Shown piece after piece: positions 43,469-60,476 of a stretch of 64,000 bases of DNA (its first letter is position 1; each line of letters opens with the position of its first letter). Made by a program: the position numbers and the translations under genes. Below the pieces are notes generated by a model. That model saw only the letters and a program-made list of their open reading frames with translations. It did not search any database and was not told the origin of the DNA. Origin of the DNA: Macrostomum lignano (Eukaryota); contig NIVC01000662.1 of assembly GCA_002269645.1 (NCBI GenBank), positions 248,001 to 312,000 on the forward strand, read 5' to 3'.

Positions 43469-44208
43469 TCAGTCCGAACGGCCCCGCCAGCCTCGCCTGC
43501 AGACTCTTTCGCGTCTCCAACGCGACCACTTGCAGACGCCGGAGCAGCAGTCTTTGTCCCGTCTGCAGCTCTGGCGGCGTGGCTTGCAGGAGCGCTTGCG
43601 CCTGCAGACTCGCTCACGTGACCTAAAGGACCACTTGCAGACTCCGGAGCAGCAGTCTTTGTCCCGTCTGCAGCTCTGACGACGTGGCTTGCAGGAGCGC
43701 TTGCGCCTGCAGACTCGCTCACGTGACCTGAACGACCACTTGCAGACGCCGGAGCAGCAGTCTTTGTCCCGTCTGCAGCTCTGGCGGTGCTCCTGACACG
43801 AGCTCACGCACCTGCCTCTTCGACAGTCGCCGGTGCAGCAGCGTCGCCACGGACGGTCGTCGTCGCATCGCTCGCCGTCGCGCCTGCAAGCGTCTGCGGG
43901 GAGTTCGGGACAGGTTTGATAGCAAGCAATCAGAATAGCTCAGGAACTCAATGAAGGCAAACCGGTGACGCTTCAGGTAAACCTCTTCAGCTGAAGCAAC
44001 CAATCACAATAATCCCTGAGCCAGAAAGACTCAGCAATGTTTCAGGACAGATGCACAGAGACATCAAACCAGAACCAGTGCGGCTTCAGAAAATAATCAA
44101 GGAAAGGTGAGAAAAGCTCCTCACAGCGGAACACAGCGCAGTGAACTCACCAGTGCAACAGATCAGTACGGCTGCCATCGCGGCCAGGTAAATCAGAGTG
44201 CCTCTCAT
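43469..44208 (-). CDS. Secreted multi-knottin (ICK-type) precursor, copy A; exons 44208-44151 and 43893-43469; 160 aa, 4 Cys-framework domains
   Basis: Signal peptide MRGTLIYLAAMAAVLICCT, phase-1 GT-AG intron, then DACRRDGERCDDDRPWRRCCTGDCRRGRC and three C-x6-C-x5-CC-x3-C-x10-C domains, the last two preceded by RRKR. Confidence 0.88.
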
Positions 44209-44278
44209 GTTTTCAAGTCGGTCAAGTAAATATTGCTCTGAGGTTTGGTGTAGTCTGCTCTAATCAAGATGCGATCGC

Positions 44279-44285
44279 TTTTATA
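44279..44285 (-). promoter_or_regulatory. TATA box of knottin copy A
   Basis: TATAAAA ~70 bp upstream of the ATG, conserved in paralogues. Confidence 0.6.
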
Positions 44286-44689
44286 GACAGTGAAGCCACT
44301 TGATGGACGTTAATGAGCAACGTGCAGCGGTTACTGGGGCACGCTATGCGGAAACTGACTTGCTTTTGGATAGCAACAGTAAGTGCCTTGTGAATTGCGT
44401 AATTTTGCATTAGTGCTTTCAAACAAGTCCTGTTGCTAATCACTGATTGTCTTTGAAGCGGCCGCCAAGTCTGTCAACTAATTTGGCGCTTAAATTATCA
44501 TCAAAGGCACCCGTGAATTAAACTGCTAATTAGCTCGTGAGTTAGCAGCAATTAACATAGTGGACTGATCAATCGAAATAAGAGTTGGTCTAGGTGCTAT
44601 CTGTGCTGGTTGTACCAGCAAGTAAGTAAGTGAGTGGATCCATGTTATCCAGGTGAAGTTTTTATGCTTCAACTCGCACTCAACCGTTC

Positions 44690-45510
44690 CAGAAACCCGA
44701 CTGAATCCTTGCAGAAACCCCACCGAATCGTTCAGAAACCCCACCGAATCATTCCAGAAACCCCACCGAATCCTTCCAGAAACGCCACTGAATCCTTCCA
44801 GAAACCCGACTGAATCCTTGCAGAAACCCCACCGAATCGTTCAGAAACCCCACCGAATCGTTCCAGAAACCCCACCGAATCCTTCCAAAAACACCACTGA
44901 ATCCTTCCAGAAACCCCACCGAATCGTTCCAGAAACACCACTGAATCCTTCCAGAAACCCCACTAAATCCTTCCAGAAACACCACTGAATCCTTCCAGAA
45001 ACCCCGCCTAATCCTTCCAGAAACCCCGCCTAATCCTTCCAGAAACCCCACCGAATCCTTCCAGAAACCCCACCGAATCCTTCCAGAAACCCCACTAAAT
45101 CCTTCCAGAAACACCACTGAATCCTTCCAGAAACCCCGCCTAATCCTTCCAGAAACCCCACCGAATCCTTCCAGAAACCCCACCGAATCCTTCCAGAAAC
45201 CCCACTAAATCCTTCCAGAAACACCACTGAATCCTTCCAGAAACCCCGCCTAATCCTTCCAGAAACCCCGCCTAATCCTTCCAGAAACCCCACCGAATCC
45301 TTCCAGAAACCCCACCGAATCCTTCCAGAAACCCCACTAAATCCTTCCAGAAACACCACTGAATCCTTCCAGAAACCCCGCCTAATCCTTCCAGAAACCC
45401 CACTAAATCCTTCCAGAAACACCACTGAATCCTTCCAGAAACCCCGCCTAATCCTTCCAGAAACCCCGCCTAATCCTTCCAGAAACCCTACCGAATCCTT
45501 CCTGAAACCT
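44690..45510. repeat. Minisatellite, 22-bp unit (gaatccttccagaaaccccacc), left arm of the inverted duplication
   Basis: Tandem repetition; reverse complement of the array at 47660-48080. Confidence 0.93.
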
Positions 45511-45889
45511 TACTTCGGAGTATGATGCCACTCTGCCGTTGCTCCCAGCTACTTACTTATTGAGAAAAAATTGAGGACAATGAGGATTCAAAGTCTCAAT
45601 AGAAATTGGAGCTCAGGCAGTCAAATTAGTATTACGAGCGCTCGTAGTAGTATTTCAGTAGTTTCAGTCGTATTTTTAGAATTGTGGATTTTAGGTACTC
45701 CCAGCTGAACCCCTCTTCCGCGCCAGCCCAAGCGCCAAACTTTTGTTTCTTTCCTCGCCTGGTGTTTCAGCCCAAAGCTGTCTGCCAGCCATGTACATTT
45801 CAGGGGCGCTGGGCTAATGTACATTCGGCTGCACCCATATCAAGAAGCAGTTTAGACTGCAAGTCACCCCAACTGCTTTTCTTCTTGGA

Positions 45890-57892: not shown

Positions 57893-58503
57893 TCAGTTCG
57901 AGCGGCCCCGCCAGTCCCGCTTGCAGATTCGCTCACGTGACCTGAACGACCACTTGCAGACGCCGGAGCAGCAGTCTTTGTCCCGCCTGCAGCTCTGACG
58001 AAGTGGCTTACAGGAGCGCTTGCGCCTGCAGACTCGCTCACGTGACCTAAAGGACCACTTGCAGACTCCGGAGCAGCAGTCTTTGTCCCGTCTGCAGCTC
58101 TGGCGGTGCTCCTTGCAGGAACGGTTGCGCTTGCAGACTCGCTCACGTGACCTGAACGACCACTTGCAGACTCCGGAGCAGCAGTCTTTGTCCCGTCTGC
58201 AGCTCTGGCGGTGCTCCTGACACGAGCTCACGCACCTGCCTCGTCGACAGTCGCCGGTGCAGCAGCGTCGCCATGGACGGTCGTTGTCGCATCGGTCGCC
58301 TTCGCGCCTGCAAGCGTCTGTGGGATGTTGGGAAAGAATTTTTGGTACGGGTACACGCAATCCAGATATGGTCGTTCACGTCACGTGAGCGAGTCTGCTA
58401 CAGCGTACCCGAATTTCTTTTTAGAGCAAAGCAAAGTGAACTCACCAATGCAGCAGATCAACACTGCCGCCATTGCGGCAAGGAAAATCAGAGTGGCCTT
58501 CAT
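57893..58503 (-). CDS. Secreted multi-knottin precursor, copy D; exons 58503-58446 and 58317-57893; 160 aa, 4 domains
   Basis: MKATLIFLAAMAAVLICCI|DACRREGDRCDNDRPWRRCCTGDC..., with linkers KRNR and RRKR. Canonical splice sites. Confidence 0.88.
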
Positions 58504-59802
58504 GCTTTCAAGTCTCCAAAGAGCAATTAGATCTTTGACTGTAGCAAGGTTAGGGTTGATCCAGACTTTCTGAGAGCTATCGCTTTTATGGACTATATCT
58601 TGCCAATGCAGTATTAATGGACAGCGTGCCAGGAGTGTTACGCAACACGAGCAATGAGACCTTTTGACAATTGATTTTGTCATGTTGATTAATTAGTACG
58701 ACGTATCAACGTCCTAATTATTACCTTGTACCAAATTGGAATTTTTATTTGAATTGGCGCATGTTGCAAGTTGCTCATCCGACAAATTCTGAAGCAACAA
58801 AAACAAGGTTACTTTAGAGAACGAATTGATGTAATGTGTTGTGACATGGCGTGATCGGATCTAGCTATGCTCTTTCAACGGACGAGGGTTATACGAGCTA
58901 TGCCTACGTGCTACGTCAAACCGCTGGCCTGACTGACTTCGAAACTTGAGAGGGTGGATCGCGTCGACCAACTCGATCAACCCGTCCTTGGCCGTCCCGA
59001 ACTCAAGCCGCAGTCGACAAGGAGCACAGCACAACACGGAACGCAGAACGTACTTAACAAACTATAGGTAAAAATTCTTCGAATACGATAATTCTGTCGG
59101 TTGATGAGAAGCAACAAATACATGTAATAACGCAGACACGCGGGCAAAGGGGAGAAGAGTGCAATAATGGGCCCACTTGATCGAAAGCGCAAGCGATTGC
59201 TCATCGGTGCAAGTGTACCGGGCACAACTAATGCAAATGGAACATTGCGCAAGAACGCTGCTTCTAAGCTGTGAAAACGGCTCCTTAACTCGGACATAAA
59301 TCAGAAAGTTTGATATAGTCGTGGCATAATTCATAAAATCTGATCTTCTCGTACGCTCGTAGTCATGGCATAACTCAGCAAATTTGCCTAGTGTTGGCAT
59401 CAGTCAAGGCATCGATCTAGTCGTGGCGGGATTCAACAAAACTTCAAGACATTCATCCTTCGGATTCAGCGCAAGCAGGTGTCGCTTCAGGTAAACTTCG
59501 GTAAGCTGCGAAGACCAGTAATTAACCCTGTTGGAGTAAATGGCTACGTGCACCGATCAAGAGCCAAGTGTTATTAACTGACGGCTCATCAGCGGTCTAA
59601 AAATTGTGGTAAAAAAATGCATAGATAAACAGATGTAATTACCATTCACCTGCTCCATTAATCAGGTAGGTAATTACGACTTTAATTATAACTAATTAAT
59701 ACGGCAACATTAACTGTCAATAGTTCTCATTGCTCGTGTTATGCAACATGCCCATCGACCCTGGCACGATGTTCATTATTACTGCATTGGCAAGAGATAG
59801 TC

Positions 59803-59809
59803 TATAAAA
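59803..59809 (+). promoter_or_regulatory. TATA box of knottin copy E
   Basis: TATAAAA ~80 bp upstream of ATG 59890. The equivalent site in copy D (58590-58584) reads CATAAAA. Confidence 0.6.
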
Positions 59810-59889
59810 GCGATAGCTCTCAGCAAGACTGGATCAACCCTAACTTTGCTACAGTCAAAGATCGAATTGCCTTTTATAGATTTGAAAGC

Positions 59890-60476
59890 ATGAAGGCCAC
59901 TCTGATTTTCCTTGCCGCAATGGCTGCAGTGTTGATCTGCTGCACTGGTGAGTTCACTTTGCTTTGCTCTAAAGAGAAATTCAGATACGCTGTTCAGCCT
60001 GTGCGTGTGTACCCATACCCAACATTCTTTCCCAACATCCCACAGACGCTTGCAGGCGCGAAGGCGACCGATGCGACAACGACCGTCCGTGGCGACGCTG
60101 CTGCAGTGGCGACTGTCGACGAGGCAGGTGCGTGAGCTCGTGTCAGGAGCACCGCCAGAGCTGCAGACGGGACAAAGACTGCTGCTCCGGAGTCTGCGAG
60201 TGGTCGTTCAGGTCACGTGAGCGAGTCTGCAAGCGCAACCGTTCCTGCAAGGAGCACCGCCAGCGCTGCAGACGGGACAAAGACTGCTGCTCCGGAGTCT
60301 GCGAGTGGTCGTTCAGGACACGTGAGCGAGTCTGCAAGCGCAAGCGCAACCGTTCCTGCAAGGAGCACCGCCAGCGCTGCAGACGGGACAAAGACTGCTG
60401 CTCCGGAGTCTGCGAGTGGTCGTTCAGGACACGTGAGCGAGTCTGCAAGCGCGACTGGCGGGGCCGCTCGAACTGA
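59890..60476 (+). CDS. Secreted multi-knottin precursor, copy E; exons 59890-59947 and 60046-60476; 162 aa, 4 domains
   Basis: MKATLIFLAAMAAVLICCT|DACRREGDRCDNDRPWRRCCSGDC..., with linkers KRNR and KRKRNR. Canonical splice sites. Confidence 0.88.

Follow-up and report, generated by a model that had tools for sequence, protein, structure and literature searches.

In a stretch of about 17 kb from Macrostomum lignano, we found five intact, unannotated two-exon genes and two decayed copies. With slightly better than even confidence, we interpret these genes as a lineage-specific, recently duplicating family of secreted precursors, which convertases would cut into 31-residue cationic knottins and a double knot from the N terminus, the probable role being defence. 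The window, meaning the whole stretch of DNA analysed, comprises 64,000 nucleotides (contig NIVC01000662.1, positions 248,001 to 312,000), and the coordinates of the following features refer to it.

Gene A, 43469..44208, minus strand: exon 1 44151-44208, intron 43894-44150 (257 nt), exon 2 43469-43893; product of 160 aa with 4 domains; TATA box at about 44278-44285
Gene B, 48552..49816, plus strand: exon 1 48552-48609, intron 48610-48866, exon 2 48867-49816; product of 335 aa with 9 domains; TATAAAAG at 48475-48482
Unit array of gene B, 48959..49798, plus strand: eight in-frame 105-nt units, each corresponding to one predicted knottin and its linker
E-like broken copy, 52833..53205, minus strand: 3'-UTR relic and the final ~19 nt of coding sequence
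F-like broken copy X, 53878..54340, plus strand: promoter and complete exon 1 (54225-54282), then 58 nt of intron; exon 2 gone
Gene D (divergent), 55548..56260, minus strand: exon 1 56203-56260, intron of 257 nt, exon 2 55548-55945; product of 151 aa with domain 1 and two 48-codon units containing 8 and 9 Cys
Gene E, 57893..58503, minus strand: exon 1 58446-58503, intron of 128 nt, exon 2 57893-58317; product of 160 aa with 4 domains; CATAAAAG at about 58583-58590
Gene F, 59890..60476, plus strand: exon 1 59890-59947, intron of 98 nt, exon 2 60046-60476; product of 162 aa with 4 domains, one linker extended to KRKRNR; TATAAAAG at 59803-59810
Signal-peptide exons: 44151-44208 (minus), 48552-48609 (plus), 54225-54282 (plus), 56203-56260 (minus), 58446-58503 (minus), 59890-59947 (plus)

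The cluster genes are real, as indicated by their splice sites, frame-specific constraint, and conserved promoter. GT-AG models with phase-1 introns were recovered for all five intact genes, as the initial annotation had proposed, and its predicted junction 48609/48867 was exact in the model of gene B. The 58-nt signal-peptide exon was present in six copies reading M[KR][AG]TLI[FY]LAAMAAVLICC, five of which are predicted to splice (GT..AG, phase 1) to a Cys-rich exon across introns of 257, 257, 257, 128, and 98 nt. The TATA-like box described earlier as common to the genes was likewise found conserved, as GTCTATAAAAGCGAT[AC]GC, 77 nt 5' of the ATG in genes A, B, and D and 87 nt 5' of it in genes E, F, and copy X, with the variant CATAAAAG in gene E and one A lost in copy X. 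Four of the five genes are not followed by a canonical AATAAA. Two subfamilies, between which the introns cannot otherwise be aligned, share the signal exon, splice sites, TATA box, and stop position.

The two broken copies had been described as sharing the signal exon, which holds for one of them. Copy X, an 88% match to 59536-60005, keeps the promoter and exon 1, and no Cys-rich exon was found downstream of the latter. The other copy consists of the 3'-UTR relic, a 77% match to 57511-57911, with its short coding remnant; the gene body is deleted at the junction 53205/53207, and the adjoining 53207-53770 matches the E-F intergenic region 58959-59528. An SLC25A42 open reading frame, 100% identical to a UniRef protein of M. 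lignano, neighbours the cluster.

The Cys-rich frame is the sole stop-free frame across the whole second exon. Its dN/dS was 0.26-0.38, compared with 1.2-3.3 in the other sense frames, and it alone among the sense frames is under purifying selection. Pairwise dN/dS between cluster genes ranged from 0.26 to 0.52, and the indels among them (6 and 39 nt) keep the frame. In a six-frame translation of the window, all matches to the Cys pattern fell within the cluster loci.

The products carry a plausible signal peptide, judged by heuristic criteria only: the n-region contains K/R, the hydrophobic core spans 14 residues with a mean Kyte-Doolittle value of 2.7-3.0, and positions -3/-1 are occupied by small residues. 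This agrees with the secretion proposed initially. Behind the signal peptide lie three to nine homologous tandem disulfide-rich domains (4, 9, 3, 4, and 4 in genes A, B, D, E, and F), the arrangement by which secreted cysteine-rich repeat proteins (SCREPs) are recognized. The Cys spacing is 6-8-0-3-4 in domain 1 (D1) and 6-5-0-3-10 in all repeat units of genes A, B, E, and F. These four genes have the six-Cys C-C-CC-C-C framework with loop lengths typical of the inhibitor cystine knot (ICK), as had been reported for the whole family; gene D departs from it, with two repeat units of 48 codons each (tandem period 144) containing 8 and 9 Cys and a mature protein of 23 Cys. The proposed size of ~31 aa for a cationic peptide was arithmetically right, the computed net charge being +4 to +8 and the mass about 3.7 kDa. 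Hydrophobic residues make up just 13% of the repeat peptide, and Arg and Lys together account for 27-38% of the cluster proteins.

Basic motifs had been noted at most joins between domains. Between repeat units, each of the 14 junctions has the sequence [KR]R[KN]R-S (KRKR, RRKR, KRNR, or KRKRNR, then Ser), and the linker always stands directly after the last Cys, in a form invariant across paralogues that differ elsewhere. Additionally, all 19 repeat units terminate in C-[KR]R. The D1-D2 junction is VSS in all five genes and has no basic site, a missing cleavage motif that the initial annotation overlooked; the predicted N-terminal product is therefore a 62-residue double knot. We infer convertase cleavage of the precursors from the linker motif, and dibasic linkers in tandem disulfide-rich proteins have been interpreted as convertase sites (PMC9885460). 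KRNR, found in genes E and F, would be a poor furin site because of Lys at P4 and Asn at P2, and the basic tetrads are less diagnostic here than in ordinary proteins, given the Arg+Lys content of the whole protein. The repeat peptides also hold internal RR pairs, which would need shielding by the fold if convertases cut the precursor.

The cluster domains are predicted knottins, in line with the earlier assignment. AlphaFold2 modelled the repeat unit with a pLDDT of 92.5 and a C-terminal beta-hairpin (E19-23/E28-32), and D1-D2 with a pLDDT of 79; the knottin model may merely track the Cys pattern. In Foldseek, the matches of the repeat unit were almost exclusively solved knottins (TM 0.70-0.77, rmsd 1.4-2.4 A, probabilities 0.9-0.97) at E-values of 0.3 or higher, which are not significant because the domains are tiny. 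The Foldseek matches of the domain models included Tst2, SOTI-III, psalmotoxin-1 (38% identity, TM 0.74), and maurocalcin (42% identity), and DkTx was one match of the D1-D2 model. Weak sequence matches likewise pointed to knottins only.

The family had been presented as unnamed, and the searches bear this out. No single domain reached any Pfam family cutoff. The ICK toxin families tested were Omega-toxin (PF06357), Toxin_29, Toxin_21, Conotoxin (PF02950), and Toxin_27 (calcins), and single-unit scores of 12-18 bits against gathering cutoffs of 21-25 place the units outside these named families. The nine-domain gene B protein exceeded some whole-protein cutoffs solely by summing 7-8 partial hits; its Omega-toxin score of 51.4 bits covers profile positions 3-24 of 37. 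Whole-protein scores for UPF0506 (PF11703) of 23.6, 23.6, 30.8, and 41.6 bits (cutoff 23.2) were summed over 2-8 stretches spanning just profile positions ~30-56 of 59, at a few bits per domain, and gene D had no match to this profile. Searches of a collection of about 15 billion proteins found no close relative and, like exact look-ups, no M. lignano entry; thus, the family is unannotated. Tandem C-x6-C-x5-CC-x3-C proteins were matched in a profile search at E = 1e-8 to 1e-6.

That the family is expanding, as claimed earlier, is supported by near-identical units within gene B and by inverted and tandem gene duplications. Genes A and B form a 97% inverted repeat over 1045 nt, the arms of which differ in unit number. 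Tandem Repeats Finder (TRF) reported a period of 105, 7.5 copies, and 98% matches in gene B, and units B3-B8 differ by 0-2 positions per 105 nt. Unit B2 matches A2, E2, and F2, unit B9 matches A4, and the 5' half of gene D is 95-99% identical to gene B. Gene B acquired five near-identical extra units very recently.

In the mechanism that we propose, each gene would encode a preproprotein in which several knottin-type (ICK) domains are strung behind a signal peptide of 19 residues. The ancestral gene would have had four modules, namely a near-neutral D1 with the spacing 6-8-0-3-4, and D2, an internal unit, and a terminal unit with the spacing 6-5-0-3-10; the internal unit would have been amplified to six near-identical copies in gene B, and gene D would have evolved a longer unit with additional cysteines. 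If expressed, the precursor would enter the secretory pathway, where every module would fold and oxidise independently, with the presumed knottin disulfide connectivity (I-IV, II-V, III-VI, the third bond threading the ring). Furin/PC-type convertases would then cut on the C-terminal side of the [KR]R[KN]R motif wherever two repeats meet, and likewise behind the C-[KR]R preceding the short C-terminal tail, and a carboxypeptidase would trim the basic residues. The yield would be several of the 31-residue knottins (about 3.7 kDa, +4 to +8) and one uncleaved D1-D2 double knot.

The most likely role of these peptides is that of an extracellular defence secretion, antimicrobial or deterrent/toxin-like, which would act via polycationic binding to membranes, channels, or polyanions. 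An antimicrobial peptide that disrupts membranes would be expected to contain more hydrophobic residues, which speaks against such a mode of action. M. lignano grazes on diatoms and is not known as a venomous animal. A bolder and unlikely version is that this non-venomous flatworm mass-produces calcin-like, cell-penetrating cationic knottins from precursors of up to nine copies processed by furin-type convertases, and uses them, together with bivalent D1-D2, to defend itself chemically or, as seminal peptides, to manipulate its partner. Production of knottins from multi-copy precursors is known mainly from plants. If true, this would provide a genetically tractable animal (RNAi, transgenesis) for knottin polyprotein folding, processing, and expansion.

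The least credible alternative, which we consider highly improbable, is that the loci are non-functional, being a 105-bp minisatellite with accidental open frames, pseudogenes, or assembly duplicates. The window is full of minisatellites, the repeat is open in all frames on both strands, two copies are plainly dead, and inverted duplicates can arise as long-read assembly artefacts. Nevertheless, only one frame stays open over the whole exon and constraint is specific to it, the indels preserve that frame, the two arms of the palindrome share 97% rather than 100% identity and have different unit numbers, and the gene signals are conserved over two subfamilies with unalignable introns. The modules might also be knottin-type serine-protease inhibitors, like those of squash and spinach/Mirabilis, released from a precursor that holds several inhibitors, much as in potato type II or pacifastin precursors, and serve epidermis or gut protection or proteolysis control. 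The structural matches with the best scores included the spinach trypsin inhibitor SOTI-III (TM 0.77, rmsd 1.4 A), the profile aligns CkehRQsCRRDKDC to CPKILQRCRRDSDC of an MCoTI-II-based peptide, and exposed Arg-rich loops could provide P1 residues. These matches are all insignificant (structure E 0.39 or higher; sequence 6.8 or higher), the Pfam Tryp_inh score of about 12 bits lies below the cutoff of 25, and no canonical reactive-site loop was identified. We regard this function as quite improbable.

Two further readings are unlikely, but less so than an inhibitor function. The proteins could stay uncleaved as multivalent SCREPs, beads-on-a-string polycations of 3-9 knots that bind avidly to a repetitive or multimeric target, such as polyanions in the glycocalyx or in mucus, eggshell or adhesive material, or a channel made of several subunits. 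Since the D1-D2 junction is clearly no cleavage site, the product should be bivalent at the least, and the bivalent ICK toxins DkTx and Hi1a, the former among our Foldseek matches, are established (PMC6262176). Moreover, the basic linkers may just mirror the overall composition, and the nearest database matches (mite, whelk, and foraminiferan) are uncleavable tandem ICK-like proteins without dibasic linkers. Cleaved precursors are favoured by the constant form and position of the linker motif at every repeat junction and by the amplification of identical units in gene B, which resembles multi-copy peptide precursors, and linkers of five residues would give the domains very little independent reach for multivalent binding. 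Alternatively, processed and secreted knottins could have a reproductive role in this outcrossing hermaphrodite, as seminal-fluid, prostate, cement-gland, or egg-associated peptides under sexual selection. M. lignano has 76 prostate-limited transcripts, many of them encoding secreted proteins, with signal peptides in 38 of 65 (PMC5977470). Reproductive proteins are typically lineage-restricted, duplicated in tandem, and variable in copy number. The dN/dS between cluster genes indicates constraint, not rapid diversification, and the cluster sequences were not found in the supplementary text of PMC5977470, which may contain no sequences.

The architecture of disulfide-rich repeats arranged in tandem and joined by dibasic linkers is already known, and ScrepYard set aside 2153 such proteins as cleaved precursors (PMC9885460). 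Like SCREPs, the M. lignano products consist of a predicted signal peptide and, behind it, homologous disulfide-rich domains in tandem on short linkers (PMC6262176, PMC9885460), and dibasic linkers of this kind are read there as subtilisin-like convertase sites (PMC9885460). In contrast, two-domain architectures dominate ScrepYard (PMC9885460), whereas M. lignano has up to nine ICK-type domains and combines a non-cleavable D1-D2 pair with predicted cleavable repeats. Neither flatworms nor Platyhelminthes are mentioned in PMC6262176 or PMC9885460. DkTx and Hi1a of spiders and the remipede double-ICK similarly contain tandem ICK domains in one secreted chain, with an uncleavable linker comparable to that of D1-D2. 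They are venom components of venomous arthropods with demonstrated channel pharmacology, the remipede peptide reportedly being a ryanodine-receptor activator (PMC9950431), whereas the M. lignano knottins are predicted from the genes of an animal with no venom apparatus and have no significant sequence similarity to these bivalent toxins.

The best statistical matches were UPF0506 and tandem ICK-like proteins of Dinothrombium tinctorium, Babylonia areolata, and Bolivina argentea, all functionally uncharacterised; none of the tandem ICK-like matches inspected had basic linkers, a D1 module, or the signal exon. Scorpion calcins (maurocalcin, imperacalcin; Toxin_27) have the identical spacing C-x6-C-x5-CC-x3-C-x10-C, a similar length (33 residues, compared with 31 in M. 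lignano), strong net positive charge, and a common core K-D-C-C-S, and the identity of maurocalcin to the repeat unit in Foldseek (42%) extends over 31 columns. Homology is unsupported, with a Toxin_27 Pfam score of 13.1 bits against a cutoff of 25, and the resemblance may be convergent. In scorpion calcins, which penetrate cells and activate ryanodine receptors, each precursor holds a single copy. Momordica TIPTOP and cyclotide Oak-type precursors contain several knottin domains, which are freed by proteolysis, with release and cyclisation by asparaginyl endopeptidase at Asn/Asp and not at basic convertase sites. Although the M. lignano family has no sequence relationship to these plant proteins, it shares with them a multi-domain precursor in which copy number varies among paralogues.

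Five intact two-exon genes (A, B, D, E, and F) at 43469-60476 very probably represent real genes, as predicted from the sequence, and encode proteins made of tandem cystine-knot-like domains. A six-frame pattern scan of the window recovered six occurrences of the signal-peptide motif LAAMAAV and 20 stop-free matches to the C-C-CC-C-C pattern, every one of the latter within 43.4-60.5 kb. The signal exons (n = 5) are 58 nt long, end in G/GTGAGT, and are followed by a CAG/AC acceptor in phase 1, with introns of 257, 257, 257, 128, and 98 nt. The two-exon structure proposed in the initial annotation was confirmed in its splice sites, phase, and products, and its example junction in gene B, 48609/48867, was exact. 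The corresponding predicted junctions are 44151/43893 in gene A, 56203/55945 in gene D, 58446/58317 in gene E, and 59947/60046 in gene F.

Predicted products of the intact genes
Gene A: 160 aa, 4 domains
Gene B: 335 aa, 9 domains
Gene D: 151 aa, 3 domains; exon 2 at 55548-55945
Gene E: 160 aa, 4 domains
Gene F: 162 aa, 4 domains

The promoter box GTCTATAAAAGCGAT[AC]GC was common to all copies, 77 or 87 nt upstream of the ATG. The A/B/D subfamily and the subfamily of E, F, and the broken F-like copy X could not be aligned outside the surroundings of exon 1, yet the promoter box was kept. Among the five genes checked, a canonical poly(A) hexamer was found 3' of gene E only. Additionally, the intron of gene E contained a 30-nt insertion (58369-58398, minus strand) missing from that of gene F. 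This insertion is the reverse complement, with one mismatch, of the coding-repeat segment TGGTCGTTCAGGTCACGTGAGCGAGTCTGC, which is present twice in exon 2 of gene E, and it could base-pair with exon 2 in the pre-mRNA.

Several frames of the 105-nt repeat are open, on both strands; across the entire exon 2, the Cys frame alone was without stops. In this frame, dN/dS was 0.26 for A-E, 0.38 for A-F, and 0.30 for E-F (0.26-0.52 over all gene pairs, with an excess of third-position changes), against 1.2-3.3 in the other two sense frames. One antisense frame also gave a low ratio but contained stops, and the ratio is low because this frame has its third codon positions in common with the Cys frame. 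Antisense ORFs, such as the 305-aa ORF at 48964-49881, were rejected on the same grounds, their apparent constraint mirroring third positions and stops occurring across the full exon 2. Length differences also preserved the frame (6 nt in gene F, 39 nt per unit in gene D). An accidental minisatellite ORF is excluded by this frame-specific constraint taken together with in-frame indels and the conservation of splice sites, promoter, and stop position, and the frame test likewise rules out a wrong-frame reading.

The AlphaFold2 model of the 35-residue repeat unit had a mean pLDDT of 92.5 and a C-terminal beta-hairpin, and that of the first two domains (D1-D2) had a pLDDT of 79. Searched against the PDB with Foldseek, both models matched nearly exclusively knottins, including sea-anemone Tst2, spinach SOTI-III, Magi4, Hc3a, DkTx, Hi1a, psalmotoxin-1 (38% identity, TM 0.74, rmsd 1.9 A), and maurocalcin (42% identity). 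The target-normalised TM for the single unit was 0.7-0.77, and Foldseek E-values were at least 0.3, as expected for domains of about 30 residues. PDB sequence searches gave insignificant matches only, all of them to knottins (omega-conotoxin SVIB, Scytodes toxins, an MCoTI-II-based peptide, and U1-TRTX-Sp1a). In Pfam, single units scored 12-18 bits against several knottin families with cutoffs of 21-25 bits, and the nine-domain gene B protein passed some whole-protein cutoffs solely through summed partial hits. UPF0506 was the most consistent match, with only about half of its profile covered. Membership in the conotoxin, omega-toxin, or calcin families was ruled out by these cutoffs. The sub-cutoff scores and the fold predictions together indicate that the domains are predicted knottins outside any named family, as initially supposed, and the in silico evidence supports reading the proteins as secreted tandem knottins.

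The C-C-CC-C-C framework was likewise borne out, whereas the description of all domains as six-Cys domains did not hold for gene D. Its repeat units are 144 nt rather than 105 nt (48 codons) and contain 8 and 9 Cys, because 13 residues inserted into the hairpin loop bring 2 or 3 additional Cys; the mature protein has an odd total of 23. The gene D unit represents either a new variant with four disulfides or a copy starting to decay.

All 14 junctions between repeat units (D2 onward) read KRKR, RRKR, KRNR, or KRKRNR followed by Ser, and C-[KR]R closes 19 of 19 repeat units, also where the short C-terminal tail follows. The basic linkers of the initial annotation were therefore present throughout the repeats, but the D1-D2 junction reads VSS in every gene. 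These motifs fit proprotein-convertase sites, although KRNR is a weak furin site. The mature proteins have a pI of 9.2-10.8, 27-38% Arg+Lys, and 23-54 Cys, and the motifs are less diagnostic than usual because the overall composition is very basic. Dibasic linkers have been taken as cleavage sites in the tandem-repeat literature (PMC9885460), and the amplified identical units are consistent with a multi-copy precursor. On balance, we lean towards cleavage of the precursors at the basic linkers. Convertase cleavage and carboxypeptidase trimming would release 31-residue peptides of ~3.7 kDa with a net charge of +4 to +8. One predicted product is SCKPRRQSCRRDKDCCSGVCKWSFRSRERVC with three disulfides (about 3717 Da), with related species at 3.7-3.8 kDa, and a second would be a 62-residue D1-D2 double knot of about 7.32 kDa.

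A putative role in extracellular defence is our first choice, and the processing and function proposed here are plausible predictions. An intact, multivalent polycation of 15-36 kDa is a live alternative, as are a protease inhibitor and a reproductive secretion. The cluster sequences were not found in three supplementary files of a seminal-fluid screen, and these files possibly hold no sequences of any kind.

The two broken copies are halves of a single duplicated head-to-head E-F unit, now degenerate. Both relics reported initially exist, but one has no coding exon left.

Relics of the E-F duplicate
52833-53205: E-like relic, E-type 3'UTR and ~19 nt of coding sequence only
53878-54340: F-like relic X, F-type promoter, exon 1, and 58 nt of intron

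Genes A and B are the arms of an inverted duplication (1045 nt, 97% identity, 3.7-kb spacer), and the 5' half of gene B is 95-99% identical to gene D. In the assembly as given, 43395-49890 forms a large imperfect A/B palindrome with arms 95-97% identical, which is either genuine or a long-read assembly artefact. Its interior contains inverted 22-nt minisatellite blocks (44687-45509 and 47659-48078), and its central ~2 kb (ORFs 45814-46838) contained no Pfam domain. The second units of genes B, A, E, and F differ by 1-5 nt and the last units of B and A (B9 and A4) by 1 nt; this positional orthology indicates an ancestor with four modules. Units B3-B8 differ mutually by 0-2 nt per 105, indicating that gene B acquired five extra internal-unit copies very recently. 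This gain and the gene duplications substantiate the expansion claimed for the family. Additionally, the 3' flanks of D, E, F, and the E-like relic have in common a ~250-430-nt segment, 74-81% identical (52833-52983, 57511-57811, 60553-60831, and 55139-55495). It carries an antisense ORF-like stretch (…NDCC.EQNRTQMCIS…VNAIPFKRV…) and could represent a long 3'UTR or, alternatively, an associated repeat.

The window is rich in minisatellites, with dozens of interspersed arrays of 12-130-nt period, some inside apparent introns (1-42000). Rfam identified nothing in the window.

Other features of the window
3760-4269: GALT exons
8765-9688, minus strand: SLC25A42, single-exon ORF, 90% of its length aligned at 100% identity with a UniRef protein of Macrostomum lignano (next-best matches, arthropod, mollusc, and annelid proteins, 47-61% identical)
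13227-15409: ABHD17-like hydrolase exons
19718-21295: Ty3/gypsy pol fragment
33862-41183: M13 neprilysin-like peptidase exons

Gene E had no match in a word-indexed search of 5.8 billion cluster sequences. An exhaustive profile search with HMMER, covering 1.84 billion representatives (~15 billion proteins), yielded 16 weak matches (E 1.3e-8 to 6e-4). Ten of these were examined: all were uncharacterised proteins of a generic tandem ICK-like type, and they came from Dinothrombium tinctorium (velvet mite), Babylonia areolata (whelk), Bolivina argentea (foraminiferan), a sequencing-run assembly, and metagenomes; none had the basic linkers and none was from Macrostomum. Protein P0131, on a 1.5-kb contig of a sequencing-run assembly, is a secreted 206-aa protein with five cationic ICK-like domains (UPF0506, 44.7 bits) and points to multi-domain knottin proteins of the UPF0506 type in another organism. 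The unspliced ORFs of the cluster had no exact database record. Because other M. lignano UniProt proteins are in the searched collection, the absence of the cluster genes from it indicates that they are unannotated. Our literature search found no paper joining Macrostomum with knottins or containing the peptide strings of the cluster, and a planarian toxin/mucus preprint did not mention ICK peptides.

M. lignano is a free-living marine flatworm for which RNAi, in situ hybridisation, and transgenesis are available. If expressed and processed as predicted, the cluster would represent a peptide family of restricted taxonomic range, so far unannotated, in this laboratory model, and would imply that standard gene calling overlooks short, repetitive, intron-split secreted-peptide genes. 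The locus is a very clean snapshot of the growth of a multi-copy peptide precursor, from a four-module ancestor to six near-identical copies of one internal unit, and also displays inverted duplication, gene decay, and domain remodelling. Peptides of 31 residues with three disulfides and a calcin-like framework would be easy to synthesise and screen. The repeat unit exactly matches the calcin spacing 6-5-0-3-10, as checked against maurocalcin (1c6w), and we regard this likeness as a lead, not as evidence of homology. The family is new and unannotated, its architecture is already catalogued, and it is no new kind of molecular system.
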